Positions 1 through 10,654 are shown, counted from the first letter of the stretch. The stretch: 17,395 nucleotides of DNA from Bugula neritina (GCA_964035545.1 CAXIUT010000008.1:1-17395); one strand, 5' to 3'. The notes: generated by a model not told the origin, from the letters alone. Translations and numbers: made by a program.

Positions 1-1786
1 TTTGCTCCTGCGCATAAATGGATTTTTGCTCAAAAGCTTTAGCCAGCGCGTAATTACCATCTAATTCTTTAGTTTTTATCTCTTTGAGTGTCCAGTAAGC
101 CCAACCTCCCCCCAAAAACGTCAACAAAATTGCAACGTAAAGCACATAAATCCAGCGCTGTTGTTGTCGAAGCAACTTGCCTCTGATTTCTGCTTTTTGC
201 TGTAACTCACGCTCTCGTTCCTGCTGTTCCAGTAATTCCTGTTTACGGCTAGCCTCATCGGCGCGGCGACTATCTTCCAGAAAACCAATCGCCTGTTCAA
301 ACCGGCCGGTATAACGTCGCGCCCATATGGCACCACTTTCAACCAAACCGACCTGCTGCTGCCAGTTCAGCGCACGCTGTAAATCTGCACCACGATACAA
401 GGTCGCTTTACCCTGCTGATGCAAGAGCGCAGTTTCAGTAAGACGTGCATAAACCTTGGCATGCTCCGCCTCTTCATCCACCCACTCACGCAATAACACC
501 CATTGCCGAATCAGGCTTTCATGTGAAATATCCACCAATGGATTGCCGGAATCCTGTTCATACAACACCAGAAAGGAACGGCCATCGCTCTGGAAGCAAC
601 GTATCACATCCAATACGTCTTCAGTACTCACCCCGGCAATACTGGCCACGCCATTCAGGTGCGCTGGCCGTCTAATCCGGCGATTGGCACTATCCACCGT
701 AGTTAAGGCCTGGAACAGTTTTTTGGCAATGAGCTGACCGTGTTCATCCAGCTCCGCCATCGCCTGATTCGCATGCTGATCTAACGAACGATGGATGGTT
801 CCGGCCTGTTCATAATGCTTTATATCCAGCGCCGAATCGGGGTACTCCGAACTATTACGCCAGACATTCCAGGTACGCATCAGCGCATGTTGCAACACCG
901 GCAAATCATCCCGGCTATGCATTTGCTCATTGAGCAATTTATCAATCAACCGCTGCGAAATTTGTGCGCCCGACAATAACACCGGCTTGGTAATCACATC
1001 CTGACGTTGTTGGCGGGTCAGCCGTGGCACCAGAAACTGGCTTTTATTAATCGCTTCCGGTAAACCATAAAACGCATCACAGTCACCCAGAAAATCTGAG
1101 CGCATGGTCAGGCAGATATACACAGGCATTGCATGGTTTAACAGGCCCAGCAGCAGCGAGACGAACTGTTCTGCCTCATGGTGCTGATTGACTTTTTCTT
1201 TGTTGTGACCAAAACGGAATAACTCTTCAAACTGGTCAACCAGAATAAACAGGCTGGTATCGTTCTCACCCTGATTCGCCAATACCGGCTCTAATAAGCG
1301 AATCAGCGCCTGTGGGCCTCGCGCCTGCATCGCCGTCAGTAACTGCTCAACGGATAAGGTATTATCCAACGCGGCTGACAATGCTGGTAATTGGGTATCC
1401 GTCGCCGCCTCTACCTCAACACTTGTTTCAGGATCCGTTTCAACGTCTGTTTCAATCTCAGTCTGAACACGCTCAGCATTGGTACGCAAAGTCGCTAACA
1501 CACTCTCCGCCAGGTTTTGTAGCGGTGACTCACCGGGCTTCAGGAGCGAAATTAACCAGCGATCCCGGTCTTGCGCCAGAAAACCGGCCTCCAGCTGTGG
1601 AATCAGGCCAGCCCGAATTAAGGACGACTTACCTGAACCGGAACTACCCACCACCGCCACAAAGCGGTTTTTATAAAGCTGCTGTAATAAGGTATTGGTT
1701 TGTTTGTCGCGACCAAAATAATACAGGCTATCCTGGCTTTCATAGGGTCGTAAGCCAACAAAAGGATTGTGCAAATCACTACTCAC
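1..1786 (-). CDS. nSTAND1-type STAND NTPase with coiled coil and transmembrane helix; 5' part only, runs off the left edge
   Basis: Not in the ORF track. Manual translation from GTG at 1786 (GAGGAA upstream) gives 595 codons with no stop: MSSDLHNPFVGLRPYESQDSLYYFGRD, Walker A GSSGSGKSSL (GSSGSGKS at 1625-1648), Walker B LFILVDQFEELF, TMRSDFLG, DLPVLQHALMRTW, VDISHESLIRQW, an E/Q/R-rich coil, then hydrophobic WIYVLYVAILLTFLGGGWAYW (92-154). Confidence 0.93.
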   Translation of the reverse strand, partial: MSSDLHNPFVGLRPYESQDSLYYFGRDKQTNTLLQQLYKNRFVAVVGSSGSGKSSLIRAGLIPQLEAGFLAQDRDRWLISLLKPGESPLQNLAESVLATLRTNAERVQTEIETDVETDPETSVEVEAATDTQLPALSAALDNTLSVEQLLTAMQARGPQALIRLLEPVLANQGENDTSLFILVDQFEELFRFGHNKEKVNQHHEAEQFVSLLLGLLNHAMPVYICLTMRSDFLGDCDAFYGLPEAINKSQFLVPRLTRQQRQDVITKPVLLSGAQISQRLIDKLLNEQMHSRDDLPVLQHALMRTWNVWRNSSEYPDSALDIKHYEQAGTIHRSLDQHANQAMAELDEHGQLIAKKLFQALTTVDSANRRIRRPAHLNGVASIAGVSTEDVLDVIRCFQSDGRSFLVLYEQDSGNPLVDISHESLIRQWVLLREWVDEEAEHAKVYARLTETALLHQQGKATLYRGADLQRALNWQQQVGLVESGAIWARRYTGRFEQAIGFLEDSRRADEASRKQELLEQQERERELQQKAEIRGKLLRQQQRWIYVLYVAILLTFLGGGWAYWTLKEIKTKELDGNYALAKAFEQKSIYAQEQ

Positions 1787-3271
1787 TTAAGCTATTTCCT
1801 CATTAAGCAGCGGGCTAATCACCTCAGGATCAATGGTTTTATGACACGGGTTTTCCAGACAATTCACCCGAAATAAAGGTGGAAAGCGCAACGTATCCCG
1901 TCCCTGGCTATTTGACAGGATGAGCACCCAGATATTTTTTAGCGCCGTTTCCGAATCCGTTAGCGTCATTTTAATTGCCTCCTGCACCCGGCTTTTAACC
2001 CATTGCGGCGCGACGTTACCAAACATAACGACTAAATGCTGGCTGTCACGAACCTTCTTCCTGAAACTTTCGATATTAGCCTCTGGCGCACCGGAATCCT
2101 GGCTAAACTGCACCTGTAAACCCTCCCGGAGTAATAGCGCGCCCAGCTCAAACGCAGGGAGTAAATCCTTCTGGTGGGTATCCAACAGGTAATTCGCGCT
2201 GCTGCCTTCGGTAGACTGCTGTGAATTTAATTCATCCAGTGTCTGACTAACCTGATCAATAAACGCCTGTTGCGAACTGCGCACAAAACGGAAACTATCC
2301 CCCTGACGTTTGCTGTTTTCCAGCGCATTAAGCCAGTCCGCCTGCGTGGTATCTTCGATGCTATTAAAATCTAAGGTATCCGGCACCCAGACTAAACTTG
2401 GATGGGACAGGGTTTTAGCGGTATCAGTTTGCGCACGCGGAAAGGTCGCACCCGCCTGGCCATCAATCGCCCGACCCCGGAATTGATCAAGCAGATGGAT
2501 ACTCAGCGAAGCCTGATCCAGTGTTGCCGATAAAGTCTGTTGATGCTCCGCTGCGGTATAAGGCGGTGGCAGGGATGGTAAAATCTCAGCCCGGTCACCA
2601 ATTTCATTGAGCAGACGTTCACGGAAAAAGCTTTGTGAATCCGCCGTATCCGCGAGAAAAACGCGAATACGCTCGTCCGCCGCCGTATCTTGTGGTTCCG
2701 CTACATCAGTGCCTGCTTCCTGCTGCGGCATTGCATCAAAGGTTACCGCTACCGCTTCGACCAAATCGCGGATTGCGGTCGCAAAAGCATTACTATTGGC
2801 TGCCAGTGGATAACCAAATGCATCTTCCTCACCATCGTGAAACACAAACCCACTATTGGGGGGAAAGCTGTCCGGCCATTCCCGGTAGTGGATGTTATTA
2901 ATCAGCACATTAAATAAACGCCCCTGATTACCCACCATAATGCCACCGGAGCGCTGTTGGTTATGATCAATAAACCATTTCAACTCCTGCGCGCAGTATT
3001 CGGAACGCTGGTATTTATGTGAATGAATAATCAGAAAGAGTGCTGAGTTTTCGATGGCATGTTTGATTTCAGTATCAAAATTGGTATTCCCGCGCAGCCC
3101 ATCTGTATCGACCCAGATTTTCAGACCATTCAAATTGCGCTTATTGGCCAGCCAGTTTTCCAGATAGTCATGAAACTGTGTAACCCAGCCCGGCTGCCCG
3201 GCGAACGGTGTATCATCATCATGCGCGTAGCTGATGAAAATATCATATTGATAAGCCGGTACGTATGCCAT
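1787..3271 (-). CDS. TIR domain protein with two additional TIR/DUF4062-like alpha/beta domains
   Basis: N-terminal YDIFISYAHDD...IWVD...SEYCAQELKWF is a TIR with the catalytic-position Glu. The middle segment (RVFLADTAD...LSIHLLDQFRG) and C-terminal segment (NYLLDTHQKD...HLVVMFGNVAPQWVKSRVQE) repeat the beta-alpha pattern; those two assignments are inference. Confidence 0.85.
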   Translation of the reverse strand: MAYVPAYQYDIFISYAHDDDTPFAGQPGWVTQFHDYLENWLANKRNLNGLKIWVDTDGLRGNTNFDTEIKHAIENSALFLIIHSHKYQRSEYCAQELKWFIDHNQQRSGGIMVGNQGRLFNVLINNIHYREWPDSFPPNSGFVFHDGEEDAFGYPLAANSNAFATAIRDLVEAVAVTFDAMPQQEAGTDVAEPQDTAADERIRVFLADTADSQSFFRERLLNEIGDRAEILPSLPPPYTAAEHQQTLSATLDQASLSIHLLDQFRGRAIDGQAGATFPRAQTDTAKTLSHPSLVWVPDTLDFNSIEDTTQADWLNALENSKRQGDSFRFVRSSQQAFIDQVSQTLDELNSQQSTEGSSANYLLDTHQKDLLPAFELGALLLREGLQVQFSQDSGAPEANIESFRKKVRDSQHLVVMFGNVAPQWVKSRVQEAIKMTLTDSETALKNIWVLILSNSQGRDTLRFPPLFRVNCLENPCHKTIDPEVISPLLNEEIA

Positions 3272-3445
3272 GCAGAACCCTTAAGATGGTGGAACTGATT
3301 TGGAGTATGCCGCCCTATTATAGTCATGCTAAACGATAAGGGATACCAAGATTCCCTCCTCAAGAAAATATAGATTGGATTGTGCCGCTGGGTTTACCAT
3401 TGAAGTGAGCGATGGAACTTTTTTTATGCGCCGATCTCAGCACAC

Positions 3446-3470
3446 AAAAAAACCGTCTTGCAAAAAACGG
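3446..3470 (-). terminator. Rho-independent terminator
   Basis: Minus strand reads CCGTTTT-TTGC-AAGACGG-TTTTTTT: a 7-bp stem with one G:U pair, a 4-nt loop and a U7 tail. Confidence 0.75.
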
Positions 3471-3539
3471 CTAAGCAGGCAAGTAGGGGGTAATGTAGTG
3501 TGGTTTGCCTGAGGATGTATAATTTTAATGTATTACTAT
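3446..3539 (-). ncRNA. Candidate FNR-activated small RNA, about 94 nt
   Basis: FNR box centred 41.5 nt upstream of 3539, TG-C-AATACT extended -10 (hexamer 3546-3551), internal CAGGCAA/TTGCCTG stem with a C-rich loop, intrinsic terminator, and no ATG in the unit. Confidence 0.55.
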
Positions 3540-3573
3540 CCGCAAAGTATTGCAGTTCTATCACAAAATGTAC

Positions 3574-3587
3574 TTGACCTAAGTCAA
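3574..3587. promoter_or_regulatory. FNR/ANR-type box
   Basis: TTGAC-CTAA-GTCAA has perfectly palindromic half-sites; the consensus is TTGAT-N4-ATCAA. Confidence 0.7.
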
Positions 3588-3821
3588 TTAATGTCATGGT
3601 TAACTCCGCTTCCTCACGGAAAATTTCCAGCATCATTGGGTGACCTGGTTGCCATCGGTGGCTTATGGAAAATAACAAAAGGGGTATGTCAGCAACTAAT
3701 TCCTGTCTGATATGATGTCAAAATGAACTCAAAACCAGACCAGCCCCATTCCTACAGCCACTGCTCACTGAGCAATATATGCTTACCGATGCCCCCCCCG
3801 TAGCGCATGTAAATCTTCGGC

Positions 3822-5313: not shown

Positions 5314-8300
5314 CTATCCCCCAGATACTTGAGCCGTTTCTGATACTTCTGACTGACAAGCTATCTCTGCACCAGGAAGATCCAACACGCCATACTGTTC
5401 ACATTCATCTCGGGTCAAAGGCTGTAATTCCTTCACAATTTCTCCAACCTCAGCGATACGTTCCCGCAGTGAACCGGGGAATATTTTCCAGACTCGTGCG
5501 GTGCCATCGGCTGAAGCCGTTACGACCTGTCTGCCATCCGGACTAATGTCCATATCGTGAATGGTTTTCTCATGGCCTTCATGGGTTGCCAGTAGTGCGC
5601 CGGTTTCCACGTCCCAGAGGCGCATGGTCTGATCATCAGAGATAGTGACGACCTGTTTTTCATCCGGGGTGAATTTGCCTTTTTTAACTGCGCCTAAATG
5701 GCCTTTGAGAGTGGCATGGAGTTTGAAGGTTTTAGCATCCCAAAGCATGCTGCGCTTGTCTTGAGAGGCGGTTACGATGTAGTTGCCTTGTTGGCTCCAT
5801 TGGGCATCGTTGACGAAGCCTTTGTGGGTATCGAGCGTTGCTAATAGTTCACCTGTGTTGGTATCCCAGATTTTGGCAGTGTGGTCTTCTGAGGCGGAGA
5901 GAATTTTACTGCCGTCGGGGCTGAAGCTGGCGGTGAAGATGGGGCCGGTGTGGCTGCTTAGGGTGTGTAGGGGTTTTCCGGTTTCGGCGTTCCAGATTTT
6001 GAGGGTGGTATCGTGGGAGGCGGTTAGGATTTTGCTGCCATCTGGGGTGAAGCTGGCTTGGGTGATAGAAGCGGTGTGTCCTTTGAAGGTGTGGATGAGT
6101 TTGCCGGTGGTTGTGTTCCAGAGTTTGGCAGTGGAGTCATTGGAGGCAGTTAGAGTTTGTTGGTCGTTGAAGGAGAAGGTGACTGTAGTTATGGTACTTT
6201 GATGGCCTTCTAGAGAGTTAATGAGTGTATTGTTTTCAGTATTCCAAATTTTTACAACTCCCTCCCAAAAGGTTACTAAAACCTTATTGTTTAATAAGAT
6301 TAATTTAATACTCGGCAGCTTTAGGTTGAAGGTGGTTTCCATTTTAATTTTTTTCAAATAAGAAAATTCAGAGTCATTTCTTATTTTATTTGTCTTAATT
6401 AGTGTTTTTGAGGTATGGCTTGGTTTTATATCCCAAATTTTTGCAGCCCCAGATTTTTCAGAAAAGTATTTTATCTCATGAGTTATTGCAGCGTTTGACT
6501 TGGGTGAAATTGTTAAGTCGCCAATCCGGCTTTTGTAATCGTTAGTAGTTCCGTATAGTGATGCTAGTTTTCTTGTGGGCTTGGTTTTCCAGTACTCTAT
6601 ATTGCCATGTTTATTAGAAATAAAAGCAAAATCCCCATTGCCGGAAACCTTAAATATATTGAGATCTCGGTTGATATTCACGGTTTTTCTTTCAATAGAA
6701 TTATTCTGCACAATTAGAAAGGCCACGCTATCTTTCCTGCTATTAATTCCTAGTATGAAGTTTTTTTCCTTACTTACTAAGAATGTTGCAATATCCTCGG
6801 CTATCTTATCAATCACTCCTGAGGATAGGTCTAGTTTTGCTAACCAAAGAGAGTCATGTATTCCAATTAATTGGTTTTCTTTAAAGAAAAAGAAAGGGCT
6901 ATAATAAGACTTTAAATTTTCTAAAGTCTCTTCTTTTTTATATTCAGAGCCAGAAAAAATTCTGGGCGACGAAAATAAATAAGACATTAGTAGTTCGCCA
7001 TTGTTGTTGAGTTCAATGTTGTTGAAAACTGCACCGCCATACTTTGAATAGGAGTCTGGCATATCTATAGTTTTAATTTTCCGGTTTTTATCAAGATCCC
7101 ATATGTCAACTCCAACATCAGGGTATCCTTTGCTATAAAAAAGTATTACTTTACCTTTCTCTATAGACTGAATTACCCCTGAGTATTTTTTGTCCTTGGT
7201 TTTGGGGATTTTAAATTTTTTGTATTTTTTAGTTTTTATATCATACAGGCCAAAGTGATTTTTTTTTGGCACGATAAGTAGGTCTTTTTTTGAATTAGAA
7301 AAAATGAATTCGTTTTCTTTTAGCTTGAAATCATCAATGATTGAAAAGTCTTTCGTAGACCATAATCGAGCAGTCTGATTTTCGTGATGAGTTAATAAAT
7401 AATCATCAGTTATGAATTTTGCAATATACTTTGTTGGTTCATGGTATTTAACTTCATTATTTTCTAACCCTGATCTCATTCCGCTGCTATTAAGCAGGCC
7501 AAATTTAGAAAGTACGGAGTCAATAGATATTATTTTTTCTGTTTTTTCTATTTTTTTTATATTTTTTATATTTTTAAATGAGTTTGTATCCCATGCTACC
7601 GCAGAGCCATCAAGGAATATTGTTAACGCAATGTCTCCGTTTGGGCTAAAAATAGTTTGATCATGTTCTTTTAAATTTTTAATTAATTGAATGCTCCGCT
7701 TGTATATACTACTGGTCGCTTCATGAGAGAGAGTATAATTAGAGCTTTCTCTGCTAGAAAATAAGGCAAGCCAAGCTAGTGCCATAGCCTTATCATCACC
7801 ACTACGCCTCCGAACATCTTTGGCAGCTAAGGCCAGACGCTGAGCAGTATTTTTGACGTTGGCTTGAGTTGCTCGCTCAGCCTCGTTCTCAGCCATCTGC
7901 CCATTAACAAACGCTAAATACCCAGCCCCACCCGCCCCAATCGCAAAAAACGCTAAAACCGCAGCTAACCCCCGCATCTTCCGCGAGGACTTCTTAGCCG
8001 CATCCGCCACCTTCTTCTCCGCCTCAGCAGCAGCCAACGCTGCTTCCTCCCGCGCCTTAGCCGCTTTCAACTCAGCTTGTTGCCGGGCTTCCTGCTCCGC
8101 CTTCTCCTCAGCAATCCGCCGAGCTTCCTCATCTATCGAAACCTGAATAAATGCCCGATCAACCTCCGCAATATTTTCCAGGCGTGTTTCCATAAACCCC
8201 TGAGCAATGGCTAATGAACGTCCCGTCAGTAAATCCCCTTCTTTACGTTCAAATAACTTCCGCGCCCGCCCAATCTGTTCACGCCATTCCAAAAAACCTC

Positions 8301-9942
8301 GTTCCGCATCCAACCAACCAGCCAATAGCGGCCATTCACGCAAAATCGCCTCATGAGCAATTTCGATAGTTTTGTTATCACCGCGCTGGTCAGCAATCAA
8401 TAAACGCTGGCTCACCAGAACATCGACCAAAGGCAGGCAATCATTATCAATCTCCGATAATTCAGCCACTCGGCGAGCAAACTCTCCCGCTTCATTAACC
8501 CGCGCCAGATGCGGAAGGAAAGTCCGACGTAACAATTTATCTAACTCGTTAGCACGCAAACCATTAGCCTGTGCTTCTGAACGTGCCTTACCAGCCGCAG
8601 CTTCAATCGCCCCTTTCACCCCACCTAGACGGTTATAATCATCCAGAGTCAGGTTCTTATCATCCAGACGCTCGTCATAAAGTCGTTCCAGCGTAAAAGC
8701 CAGGAGCGGTAGCGTATCAGCACCTTCAGAATCACGTAGCAAAGCAGCAGTCAAAGCCGGATCAACAGCAAACCCAATGCGTTCAGCCGGGCCTTCGATA
8801 ACCTGATGCAAACCAGCAGGTGGCATTGGGCTTAAGTTAAAAGGCCGGATTTGCTGTTTAGGGATACGTGAGTCAGTTTGTAACTGTGGATAAACGTCTG
8901 AACGAACCGCAATAACCAGGGTAAAATTAGCATCCTGCTCCCAAATAGGATTCAACAAACGGAAGAAGGTGCTGGCCTCTGTTGCCCCCTCCGAATTAAA
9001 CAACTCTTCACCCTGGTCAATAAACAGCACAAGGCTGGGTGGCGCAGCATTTGTGTCAAAAAAAGACTGCATTGCAGCTTTCTTAAGTGCATCCATCAAA
9101 CGGGCAAAGGCATCAGCATTTTGTTCCACAGCAAGACGAATAGCTGCTCTTGTCTTTGGGAGGCTACCGGGTAAATGCTGTGAACGGCGCGTGTCAGCAC
9201 AAGCCGTTTCCAGCGCCTGCCATAAACCTTGCTTACCTGACAAAATAGCATTGGCCGGGCGCACTGTAGGTAGTGCAATAAAATTACGGTCATCACGATT
9301 TAAACGCGGCCAAAGTCCGGCACGCATTAATGAAGACTTCCCCGCACCACTGGCTCCCAGAATCACGAATAGCCTGCGGCGGCCTGTCGAATGAATTTCA
9401 CGCAAAGTATCCAGAGCTGCCAATACATCAGCATCCCGCCCGAATAGTAAGGCGGCATCATTTTCTGTTAAGGCTTTCAAACCGGGATAAGGGCGGCAAT
9501 CCTGCGATAATGGAAAGTTTTCCGGACCTGCGCCCGCCGCTTCCAAAGCACGTTTAAGGCGTATCTCAAATTCAGGCAATGGTACTGAGATTTTTTCAAT
9601 AACCTGATAATTATTCGTAATTTCCTGAGGCAATTCCGAAACTGCCAGACCTTCGTCAATGCGCACCGGAATACAGGGCTTGCCGTATTTTTCAGCCAGC
9701 AAAAATTCATTCCAACAAGGTTTTGAATTCAGCCATGCCCGCGACAATAACAAAATAACCGCTTCACAACGCCCGGCTGCATCACGTAACGCTGTTCGCC
9801 AGCCTTTGCCTCCTGTCAAACCATGCTCCGGGTCAATGTCCATAAAGACATCATCTTCCCAGCCGTTTTGTTCCAGCCAATTCTGAACGCTTAAGGCTTC
9901 GGGGCGTTCGGTACTTGAATAACTGATGAAAATACGTGACAT
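5314..9942 (-). CDS. TIR - nSTAND1 NTPase - coiled coil - TM - WD40 beta-propeller protein (NLR-like)
   Basis: TIR: RIFISYSS...SKPCWNEF. NTPase: PYPGLKAL...LFGRD, GASGAGKSSL, LVLFIDQGEELF, LPLLAFTLERLY, EIAHEAILREWP. TM helix GLAAVLAFFAIGAGGAGYLAFV (7906-7971). Degenerate propeller blades follow, then six canonical WD40 repeats. Confidence 0.93.
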   Translation of the reverse strand: MSRIFISYSSTERPEALSVQNWLEQNGWEDDVFMDIDPEHGLTGGKGWRTALRDAAGRCEAVILLLSRAWLNSKPCWNEFLLAEKYGKPCIPVRIDEGLAVSELPQEITNNYQVIEKISVPLPEFEIRLKRALEAAGAGPENFPLSQDCRPYPGLKALTENDAALLFGRDADVLAALDTLREIHSTGRRRLFVILGASGAGKSSLMRAGLWPRLNRDDRNFIALPTVRPANAILSGKQGLWQALETACADTRRSQHLPGSLPKTRAAIRLAVEQNADAFARLMDALKKAAMQSFFDTNAAPPSLVLFIDQGEELFNSEGATEASTFFRLLNPIWEQDANFTLVIAVRSDVYPQLQTDSRIPKQQIRPFNLSPMPPAGLHQVIEGPAERIGFAVDPALTAALLRDSEGADTLPLLAFTLERLYDERLDDKNLTLDDYNRLGGVKGAIEAAAGKARSEAQANGLRANELDKLLRRTFLPHLARVNEAGEFARRVAELSEIDNDCLPLVDVLVSQRLLIADQRGDNKTIEIAHEAILREWPLLAGWLDAERGFLEWREQIGRARKLFERKEGDLLTGRSLAIAQGFMETRLENIAEVDRAFIQVSIDEEARRIAEEKAEQEARQQAELKAAKAREEAALAAAEAEKKVADAAKKSSRKMRGLAAVLAFFAIGAGGAGYLAFVNGQMAENEAERATQANVKNTAQRLALAAKDVRRRSGDDKAMALAWLALFSSRESSNYTLSHEATSSIYKRSIQLIKNLKEHDQTIFSPNGDIALTIFLDGSAVAWDTNSFKNIKNIKKIEKTEKIISIDSVLSKFGLLNSSGMRSGLENNEVKYHEPTKYIAKFITDDYLLTHHENQTARLWSTKDFSIIDDFKLKENEFIFSNSKKDLLIVPKKNHFGLYDIKTKKYKKFKIPKTKDKKYSGVIQSIEKGKVILFYSKGYPDVGVDIWDLDKNRKIKTIDMPDSYSKYGGAVFNNIELNNNGELLMSYLFSSPRIFSGSEYKKEETLENLKSYYSPFFFFKENQLIGIHDSLWLAKLDLSSGVIDKIAEDIATFLVSKEKNFILGINSRKDSVAFLIVQNNSIERKTVNINRDLNIFKVSGNGDFAFISNKHGNIEYWKTKPTRKLASLYGTTNDYKSRIGDLTISPKSNAAITHEIKYFSEKSGAAKIWDIKPSHTSKTLIKTNKIRNDSEFSYLKKIKMETTFNLKLPSIKLILLNNKVLVTFWEGVVKIWNTENNTLINSLEGHQSTITTVTFSFNDQQTLTASNDSTAKLWNTTTGKLIHTFKGHTASITQASFTPDGSKILTASHDTTLKIWNAETGKPLHTLSSHTGPIFTASFSPDGSKILSASEDHTAKIWDTNTGELLATLDTHKGFVNDAQWSQQGNYIVTASQDKRSMLWDAKTFKLHATLKGHLGAVKKGKFTPDEKQVVTISDDQTMRLWDVETGALLATHEGHEKTIHDMDISPDGRQVVTASADGTARVWKIFPGSLRERIAEVGEIVKELQPLTRDECEQYGVLDLPGAEIACQSEVSETAQVSGG
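5488..6210 (-). repeat. Six tandem canonical WD40 repeats (42 aa, 126-nt period)
   Basis: Units begin GHQS, GHTA, SHTG, THKG, GHLG and GHEK; each ends in a (T/S)(A/I)SxD...W motif. Confidence 0.9.
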
Positions 9943-9966
9943 GACATTACCCTGTACAATTGGAGG

Positions 9967-10506
9967 CTAGCGAAACTTGACCGCTGGCTGACGCTCAGAA
10001 GGAGAACACAAAGGTTCGGCATTCTTACAGTAATCAGGTTCTTTTTCTGGTTTGCCCAGCGCATACCCGTATTTTTTACATCCTGACCTTCCTTCTGTAC
10101 AACTTTGCAAATAATGTAAAGGCCAAACCCTTGTTTCAAGATACTTACGTCCTACCAAATCACCTAGTTGAGCGCGAAAGATAAACTGTCTTTCCATACC
10201 ATCTGCCAACGTGAAATTTTGCACTGCAAAGTCATAATCGCTATCAGCATTACCTTCGTCACCAGCCAAGGCAGACAAGCCAACTAACAAAGGTAGCGTT
10301 TTTTGTAATTCAGAATCAGTAGAATTTTCATCTTGGCTTTCTGCTGAAGCACATTTAAGGGACAAGGTAAACTCAGCCAGTGTACCACTGGCTTGATAAT
10401 CCTTTAAGGTGATAGCGCAGGGGTGAGATGGGGCTTCATCAGCAGCATATAAAGCCTGCACCACTGATACGAGTATAAAAAACAATAATTGGGGAAATAG
10501 TTTCAT
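9967..10506 (-). CDS. Hypothetical secreted protein with signal peptide and 6 Cys (about 179 aa)
   Basis: Likely start is ATG at 10506: MKLFPQLLFFILVSVVQALYA-AD looks like a Sec signal. The mature part has six cysteines. The stop lies 24 nt before the TIR-STAND-WD40 start codon. Confidence 0.7.
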   Translation of the reverse strand: MKLFPQLLFFILVSVVQALYAADEAPSHPCAITLKDYQASGTLAEFTLSLKCASAESQDENSTDSELQKTLPLLVGLSALAGDEGNADSDYDFAVQNFTLADGMERQFIFRAQLGDLVGRKYLETRVWPLHYLQSCTEGRSGCKKYGYALGKPEKEPDYCKNAEPLCSPSERQPAVKFR

Positions 10507-10654
10507 AGCTGTAAAGGCTTGGGGGAGTTTTCGGTGACAATAATAGTAGCACTTGTGGTGGATAGACTCTATATAAGCTAAAAACATAAAAATAGTATGC
10601 TACTCTTACGGCCTTGCCCCACAGACCCTTTACCTTCCTTGCTGAGAAGTTTTC

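Follow-up and report, generated by a model that had tools for sequence, protein, structure and literature searches.

A conserved pair of TIR-family and nSTAND1 genes in a bacterial contig from Bugula neritina: a probable two-subunit, membrane-associated conflict module

The stretch of DNA analyzed here, hereafter the window, is an entire contig of 17,395 bp (CAXIUT010000008.1:1-17395) from the 216-Mb Bugula neritina assembly (GCA_964035545.1). The contig is bacterial, with dense open reading frames (ORFs) that include a hemN-like radical-SAM gene, a glycosyltransferase gene and haem-copper oxidase genes. Two adjoining minus-strand genes lie at its beginning. Gene 1 (3271..1787, ending in the TAA at 1789-1787) encodes a protein of 494 amino acids (aa) with three TIR-family domains, here termed TIR3. 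Gene 2 starts with a GTG at 1786-1784, directly after that TAA and in the same frame, and encodes an nSTAND1 NTPase. Its reading frame exits the contig at base 1 with 595 codons present; because the window is the whole contig, the gene is cut off by the assembly. We conclude, with a probability of roughly 0.7, that the two genes are a conserved operon for a two-subunit, membrane-associated STAND module of biological conflict, acting in immunity or cell suicide, and we infer the immune role from related systems and from the properties described below.

Conservation of the gene pair

The preliminary description of this DNA had noted a zero-gap, same-frame TAA/GTG junction, and direct reading of the sequence confirms it. 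A profile-guided scan of species-representative genomes recovered 80 related loci from about ten groups, spanning Thiotrichaceae, other Gammaproteobacteria, Methylococcales, Desulfobacterales, SAR324, Blastocatellia/Pyrinomonadaceae (Acidobacteriota), many Bacteroidota and Omnitrophota. Of the 80, three stop too close behind the TIR gene to be judged, leaving 77 that are informative. At every one of these (77/77), an nSTAND1 gene of the same strand begins where the TIR gene ends, and members with only 25-29% identity are paired likewise. Adjacency of the two genes is thus far beyond chance. Over 71 loci, pairwise distances among the TIR proteins track those among their partners (r = 0.91, a value that none of 500 permutations reached), which shows co-inheritance without partner swapping, not co-evolution.

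The two genes are separate at 75 of the 77 loci. Stop and start codons overlap in 54 of these 75, as an ATGA overlap in 48 and by 1 nucleotide (nt) in 6, and the remaining junctions are gaps of 1-116 nt. Only about 6 of the 75 share a reading frame across the junction. Because the usual junction in relatives is the ATGA coupling overlap, the in-frame single stop of the window is an incidental form of the junction. True in-frame fusions were found at two loci (L008 and L037; 2/77), where a short linker joins the proteins at exactly the TIR/nSTAND1 junction. Such rare end-to-end fusions argue that both products act together. Conserved pairing, unfused close relatives, the existence of a few fusions and the complex model described below all support the proposal, made from this one sequence, that a separate, translationally coupled TIR subunit acts in trans with an effector-less, membrane-anchored STAND protein.

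Close relatives are not fused. The closest, a Thiotrichaceae metagenome-assembled genome (MAG; locus L004), has a TIR protein 81% identical to that of gene 1, a TGA stop, a 37-nt spacer and an ATG in another frame. Its partner is an nSTAND1-transmembrane-WD40 protein of 1,724 aa, the first 618 residues of which are 73% identical to the whole window fragment. The GTG start of gene 2 is supported by this homologue, since its ATG gives an N-terminus of equal length and near-identical sequence. The missing 3' part of gene 2, retrieval of which had been proposed, is not present elsewhere in the source assembly, where the search returned just generic WD40 matches of at most 42% identity.

A pattern scan detected no terminator-like site between genes 1 and 2. 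The terminator-like hairpin after the hemN-like gene (Table 1), a match to the consensus, is likely to be the upstream boundary of the two-gene operon. The spacer between the hemN-like and TIR genes (3272-3821, 550 nt) contains this hairpin and an 84-codon ORF with a TTG start (3424-3678).

Effector, switch and predicted complex

AlphaFold2 modeled the gene 1 protein as three successive beta-alpha domains, D1 to D3, with a predicted local distance difference test (pLDDT) score of 88.5. TIR_2 (PF13676) matches D1 over residues 11-107 with 56 bits against a gathering cut-off of 28, and Foldseek matches of D1 are the TIR structures of RUN1, SPARTA, AbTir and MyD88. The putative catalytic Glu96 (codon 2984-2986) sits in a YCxxEL motif on helix C (residues 91-105 in the model) and is present in 67/67 aligned homologues; it was equated with the catalytic Glu of solved TIRs by motif position, without residue-level superposition. 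Judged from these features, D1 is a canonical and active-looking TIR with predicted NADase activity.

D2 of the window copy has no Pfam match at E values up to 1. The homologous regions match DUF4062 (PF13271) in 5 of 29 members, and scores against this family are 26.1 bits for protein P0042 (residues 208-287, cut-off 24.7) and 48.7 bits for P0102. Modeled alone, D2 has a fold matching RCL (Z 11.8), the SfSTING TIR (Z 11.3) and MilB (Z 11.0). Its candidate catalytic site, position 283, is acidic in 56 of 67 homologues (Glu in 40, Asp in 16, another residue in 11). DUF4062/NIR domains, which occupy the same fold neighborhood as D2, are TIR-like NADases of phage defense (10.64898/2026.05.01.722283; 10.64898/2026.09.04.749371).

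D3 gives weak TIR_2 matches in 10 of 29 members, and the RPS4 TIR (Z 12.3) heads its structural matches, level with receiver domains. ESM Atlas matches to D3 score below 0.9 and serve as a lead only. Residues H366, D369, G418, W424 (codon 2000-2002) and R428 (codon 1988-1990) are invariant, and column counts over the 67 homologues showed no conserved acid on helix C of this domain. By hhalign, the three domains have no detectable sequence similarity to one another (probabilities below 1%), and the label "three TIR domains" comes from weak Pfam matches and fold only. The "multi-TIR" subunit of the preliminary description accordingly stands in part: D1 is a true TIR, whereas D2 is DUF4062/NIR-like and D3 has a TIR-like fold without the catalytic acid.

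In gene 2, nSTAND1 (PF20703) matches residues 8-458 at 308 bits against a cut-off of 27.1 (E 1.9e-91), covering positions 1-373 of the 379 in the model. The NTPase domain thus begins at the first residues of the protein and leaves no room for an N-terminal effector, in agreement with the preliminary description. Walker A (GSSGSGKS) occupies residues 47-54 (codons 1622-1648) and Walker B (DQFEE) residues 184-188 (codons 1223-1237). Over 45 partner proteins the domain shows strong conservation, with residues G47, G50, G52, K53, S54, D184, E187 and E188 invariant; residue 51 of Walker A is variable, being Ser in the window and Cys in the consensus. By these motifs the NTPase looks active. Between Walker A and Walker B lies an acidic, low-complexity insert rich in Thr, Asp and Glu (window ~1380-1470, STAND residues 106-135), which in the closest relative is a pure (Thr-Asp)n run of another length (L004 ~9860-9960). 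The insert looks like a fast-changing tract inside the NTPase domain.

The coil and transmembrane helix reported after the NTPase are also present, as an E/Q/R-rich stretch at residues ~497-544, recognized by composition only, and a hydrophobic segment at 545-567. Among 69 partner proteins of sufficient length, 68 have a hydrophobic helix just after the NTPase. Members of a Desulfobacterales clade (L013, L015, L016, L019, L020, L022, L024 and L025) have about five hydrophobic segments instead of one, and then pentapeptide repeats. C-terminal regions past the helix vary among partners and consist of long WD40 arrays, pentapeptide repeats, pYEATS, TPR plus FHA, TPR alone or nothing recognizable. 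Over 59 single-helix proteins, the 15 residues beside the helix contain on average 6.6 Lys plus Arg on the NTPase side versus 3.2 on the sensor side, and the NTPase (N) side is the richer in 54/59. By the positive-inside rule, this bias predicts that the sensor is in the periplasm. Both the single span and the charge bias agree with a type-II (N-in, C-out) single-pass receptor; this topology is a prediction only, and a periplasmic location sits uneasily with sensor domain types that are usually cytoplasmic.

A complex of STAND residues 1-470 with the whole TIR protein was modeled together with three controls. The interaction prediction score from aligned errors (ipSAE) was 0.69 (runs 0.68-0.70), compared with 0.00 for the best control; contact agreement was at least 64% and partner pLDDT at least 74. 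In calibration, 51 of 78 solved complexes attained this ipSAE mark, as did 2 of 108 mismatched pairs. The predicted interface is wholly in D3 (residues 366-368, 391-403, 420-438 and 456-466), includes the invariant H366, W424 and R428, and involves residues 20-38 and 63-77 of the STAND protein. Within the conserved segment 63-77 are six residues absent from a fused paralogue encoded elsewhere in the window (ORF 5314-9942). In the model, the best-conserved surfaces of both proteins meet. Docking of D3 onto the NTPase domain is therefore a supported prediction of the complex modeling, a check that the preliminary description had proposed.

Table 1. Positions of the gene pair, its domains and associated signals in the window
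Feature	Position	Strand	Basis
Gene 1, three-domain TIR-family subunit (TIR3), 494 aa; ATG at 3271, last sense codon at 1790	1790..3271	minus	ORF list, translation
D1, canonical TIR by prediction, residues 1-184	2720..3271	minus	Pfam, Foldseek
D2, DUF4062/NIR-like TIR-superfamily domain, residues 198-356	2204..2680	minus	Pfam matches of homologues, structure matches
D3, TIR-like/flavodoxin-fold, predicted docking domain, residues 357-494	1790..2203	minus	Weak TIR_2, structure, complex model
Junction, TAA (1789-1787) and GTG (1786-1784)	1784..1789	minus	Read from sequence
GAGGAA, Shine-Dalgarno-like, within the end of gene 1; GAGG 11 nt before GTG	1796..1801	minus	Sequence only
Gene 2, 5' part, nSTAND1 NTPase, 595 codons	1..1786	minus	Pfam, 308 bits
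nSTAND1 NTPase domain, residues 8-458	413..1765	minus	Pfam
Charged E/Q/R-rich helical (coil-like) linker, residues ~497-544	155..298	minus	Composition of translation only
Hydrophobic transmembrane-type helix, residues 545-567 (23 residues), K/R-rich flank before it	86..154	minus	Hydropathy scan
Terminator-like hairpin, 9-bp stem and T run, after hemN-like gene	3451..3472	minus	Pattern scan, consensus match only

Proposed mechanism and alternatives

In the mechanism that we propose, gene 2 would encode an nSTAND1 ATPase that acts as a switch in the cytoplasm; its helix would attach it to the inner membrane, and its C-terminal sensor would vary with lineage. Gene 1 would supply the effector subunit, with termination-reinitiation coupling keeping the synthesis of the two products matched. 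The TIR-like D3 would have lost its catalytic acid and would dock on the N-terminal face of the NTPase, while D1, and possibly also D2, would be NAD+-cleaving or signal-making heads. A triggered sensor would release the switch, NTP-dependent STAND oligomerization would gather the bound TIR heads, and the assembled heads would switch on, causing NAD+ depletion or production of a nucleotide signal. From established STAND and TIR biology, the outcome would be growth arrest or death of the infected cell. Binding, oligomerization, NADase activity, trigger and immune role are all predicted steps of this scheme. We read the pair as a conflict module because Glu96 is conserved in 67/67 homologues and the Walker A and B residues are invariant, because DUF4062 NADases provide a precedent, and because genes for SLATT, caspase-TPR-S and patatin proteins occur as neighbors and a second TIR-nSTAND1-WD40 system lies in the window.

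Several observations weigh against this interpretation. At the likely catalytic position 283, the window D2 has Asp and not Glu, and it has no direct Pfam match. D3 cannot be told apart from receiver-type folds by modeled structure. The complex score expresses model confidence, and its mark is also reached by 7 of 44 blindly drawn pairs of neighboring genes; similarly, the distance correlation of 0.91 can come from shared inheritance alone. The window copy of gene 2 ends before its sensor region. Most loci lie amid ordinary housekeeping genes, not in obvious defense islands, and matches of the pair in PADLOC-DB 2.0 are limited to P-loop and TIR similarity over 25-100 residues (E 1e-5 to 6e-8).

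The shared frame, the one stop codon and the zero gap would also fit a single TIR-nSTAND1 fusion that was recently broken by a nonsense mutation or mis-sequenced, making the split an artefact or the pair a pseudogene. Fused TIR-nSTAND1 genes do exist, one of them 3.5 kb away. However, 75 of the 77 related loci are split at the same point, mostly in other frames with the ATGA overlap, the nearest relative has its 37-nt spacer and frame change, and nearly all of the 124 database relatives of the TIR protein stand alone at some 500 aa. When longer proteins (976-3,100 aa) were searched for the D2-D3 region, by a search that needs shared exact words and could miss distant fusions, the known fusion L037 was the sole match. 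From the junctions of the 77 loci and the long-protein search, we reject the broken-fusion explanation as very unlikely. Nor is ORF 5314-9942, the fusion to which the preliminary description likened a joined form of the pair, its fused form: it belongs to another nSTAND1 lineage, its NTPase being only 26% identical to that of gene 2, and it has a single TIR. A different objection is that the same two-subunit machine might serve housekeeping or developmental signaling, such as envelope surveillance or signaling between cells or kin, with the TIR-family domains acting as a scaffold or making a second messenger without killing. Many loci are indeed amid ordinary metabolic genes, FHA, TPR and pYEATS sensors are typical of signaling, almost every partner has a membrane anchor, activity may be absent from two of the three TIR-family domains, and PADLOC gave no match. 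We nevertheless consider a signaling role unlikely given the invariant catalytic Glu of D1 and the fact that all characterized bacterial combinations of TIR or NIR with STAND act in defense. Variability of the sensor from lineage to lineage is typical of conflict systems, the distribution is patchy across phyla with flanks that differ even at 81% identity, and SLATT, caspase and patatin genes are neighbors at several loci.

The role of the helix can be read in two ways. The helix might merely tether the complex to the inner membrane face, or itself kill, with a cytoplasmic sensor as in classical Avs/NLR proteins and nothing sensed outside, a possibility to which we give nearly even odds. Cytoplasmic STAND proteins usually sense with WD40, TPR, FHA, pYEATS or pentapeptide domains, no cleavable signal peptide is present, a WD40 array longer than 1,000 residues would be unusual cargo for export, and a PG_binding_1 protein encoded next to the pair in Flavobacteriaceae also lacks a signal peptide. 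Against a cytoplasmic sensor, a single hydrophobic span of 19-26 residues must place its flanks on opposite sides of the membrane, the Lys plus Arg bias (6.6 versus 3.2, N over C in 54/59) would orient the NTPase inward, and the roughly five spans of the Desulfobacterales are again an odd number. We put forward more tentatively, as a possibility somewhat below even odds, a transmembrane STAND receptor with a periplasmic sensor, one span, and a cytoplasmic nSTAND1 domain that holds a separate TIR adaptor-effector through an inactive TIR-like domain. If true, such a receptor would parallel the logic of Toll-like receptors in prokaryotes: it would sense outside the cell, assemble TIRs within it, and could detect envelope events (phage adsorption or injection, or a breach of the cell wall) before the invader enters the cytoplasm.

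Related systems and genomic surroundings

To our knowledge, nearly all known STAND/NLR immune proteins of bacteria are single chains in the cytoplasm to which the effector is fused. The pair has the logic of such chains (Avs, bNACHT and TIR-nSTAND1-WD40 proteins, e.g. ORF 5314-9942), namely an effector, a STAND NTPase and a repeat sensor. As in single-chain Avs and NLR-like proteins, the effector is of the TIR or NIR NADase type and the sensor is WD40 or TPR. In contrast to them, the pair has its effector, with three TIR-family domains, on a polypeptide of its own, and a membrane helix lies between NTPase and sensor. Relative to the fused paralogue 5314-9942, the paired nSTAND1 has an extra segment at the predicted docking site. 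Searches of PADLOC-DB 2.0 gave no full-length match to a system protein, Avs included, only local matches to P-loop (mad3, mad8) and TIR (Aga_TIR, PDC-S66) entries.

A close parallel in design is with TIR-ParA dyads of the FxsC/FxsT type. They likewise have an upstream protein with an active TIR and an inactive TIR-like domain, a downstream NTPase switch and variable sensors, and their receptor-like subtype spans the membrane once in type-II orientation, keeping the NTPase inside (10.64898/2026.10.19.760177). The window pair differs in having no ParA, a DUF4062-like D2 and nSTAND1 itself as the switch. The text consulted on these dyads mentions only direct TIR-STAND fusions devoid of ParA and not a split TIR/nSTAND1 dyad. 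The best NCBIfam match of D1 is FxsC_Nterm (NF040588), at 33.2 bits against a cut-off of 130, which places D1 outside this family; neither an FxsC C-terminal match nor a ParA domain was found in the window pair. ParA occurs only in one variant of the family, a three-gene locus (L084 1-5436) that encodes a 217-aa TIR protein, an 833-aa protein (P0074) in which a KGGVGR-type ParA-like ATPase is fused ahead of the TIR-D2-D3 module, and an nSTAND1 protein 45% identical to that of the window. This variant links the split TIR3/nSTAND1 family to the TIR-ParA dyads (10.64898/2026.10.19.760177).

By its homologues and fold, D2 probably belongs with the DUF4062/NIR NADases of the Swarozyc, Vulcan, Vesta and Avs2-NIR systems, which deplete NAD+ on sensing phage proteins (10.64898/2026.05.01.722283; 10.64898/2026.09.04.749371). 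There NIR is the sole effector head, whereas here the NIR-like domain stands between a canonical TIR and a predicted docking domain. Separate effector genes recruited to a STAND protein are also known from EAD/Death-like adaptor-coupled STAND systems and membrane-proximal iSTAND/GTPase systems, some of which have transmembrane segments and cell-wall-binding domains that point to membrane action (Kaur et al. 2020 PMC7159879; 2021 PMC8195603). nSTAND1 was named in the later of these studies (Kaur et al. 2021, PMC8195603). EAD systems use homotypic adaptor domains on both partners, while the TIR-like domain of the pair is predicted to bind the NTPase directly. By analogy only, the arrangement of repeat sensor, one span, cytoplasmic platform and TIR adaptor/effector resembles Toll-like receptors with MyD88, and a WD40-regulated STAND protein recalls the Apaf-1 apoptosome. 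No receptor homology is implied; unlike in Toll-like receptors, the platform of the pair is an ATPase and not a TIR, and its topology is only predicted.

Our search of open-access papers and preprints found no description of a dyad of a TIR-NIR-docking protein and an effector-less, membrane-anchored nSTAND1. The parts (nSTAND1, TIR and DUF4062/NIR NADases, and STAND sensors) are already known, and the split dyad design appears to be the new aspect. In it, STAND/effector logic is stably divided between two subunits, predicted to be co-translated, across about ten bacterial groups. Docking appears to be the task of a degenerate TIR-like domain, and the predicted interface (W424, R428 and STAND residues 63-77) is directly testable. 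As a rule, members of the TIR3/nSTAND1 family are anchored in the membrane with a sensor that apparently faces outward, which, if the topology holds, raises the prospect of STAND-type immune sensing at the envelope. The presence of two putative NADase-type heads, TIR and DUF4062/NIR, in one effector is relevant to the activation of TIR-family assemblies. For comparison with the split pair, ready constructs exist in the natural fusions and in the three-gene variant that contains ParA.

No third gene is conserved beside the pair, the largest neighbor cluster, of generic repeat proteins, occurring in 12 of 73 loci. Genes for SLATT_1/DUF4231 two-helix membrane effectors are directly upstream of the TIR gene in five loci (including L022 7323-7775, L054 7090-7536, L056 and L065), and SLATT is also near a distant member (L086, 11642-12121). 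A caspase-DUF676-TPR-S gene is downstream in five loci. Patatin and SLATT genes lie near one distant member, and patatin and trypsin genes near another. The flanks of the pair are wholly different between the window and the 81%-identical relative, which may reflect a horizontally mobile module or an incomplete MAG. Vertical kinship with the Thiotrichaceae MAG was considered and rejected: for the oxidase subunit I and hemN-like genes of the window, the MAG has nothing closer than 25-28% identity.

In eight Flavobacteriaceae loci (including L040 6671-7879 and L047 11770-12993), the gene for a short STAND partner of about 700 aa is immediately followed, in the same orientation, by one for a PG_binding_1 protein of about 400 aa. 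This protein may be a third component peculiar to the lineage; as it has no signal peptide, we did not count it as support for periplasmic action.

The second system in the window, ORF 5314-9942 on the minus strand, is a single chain with TIR_2 (residues 4-101), nSTAND1 (151-568), a hydrophobic segment near residue 661 and WD40 repeats (~1200-1490). G+C content drops to 36% over 6001-8000, versus about 49-51% on either side. Adjoining the fused gene is a minus-strand ORF of 206 aa (9967-10587) with no Pfam family and a marginal MntA-like NCBIfam match (E 0.08).

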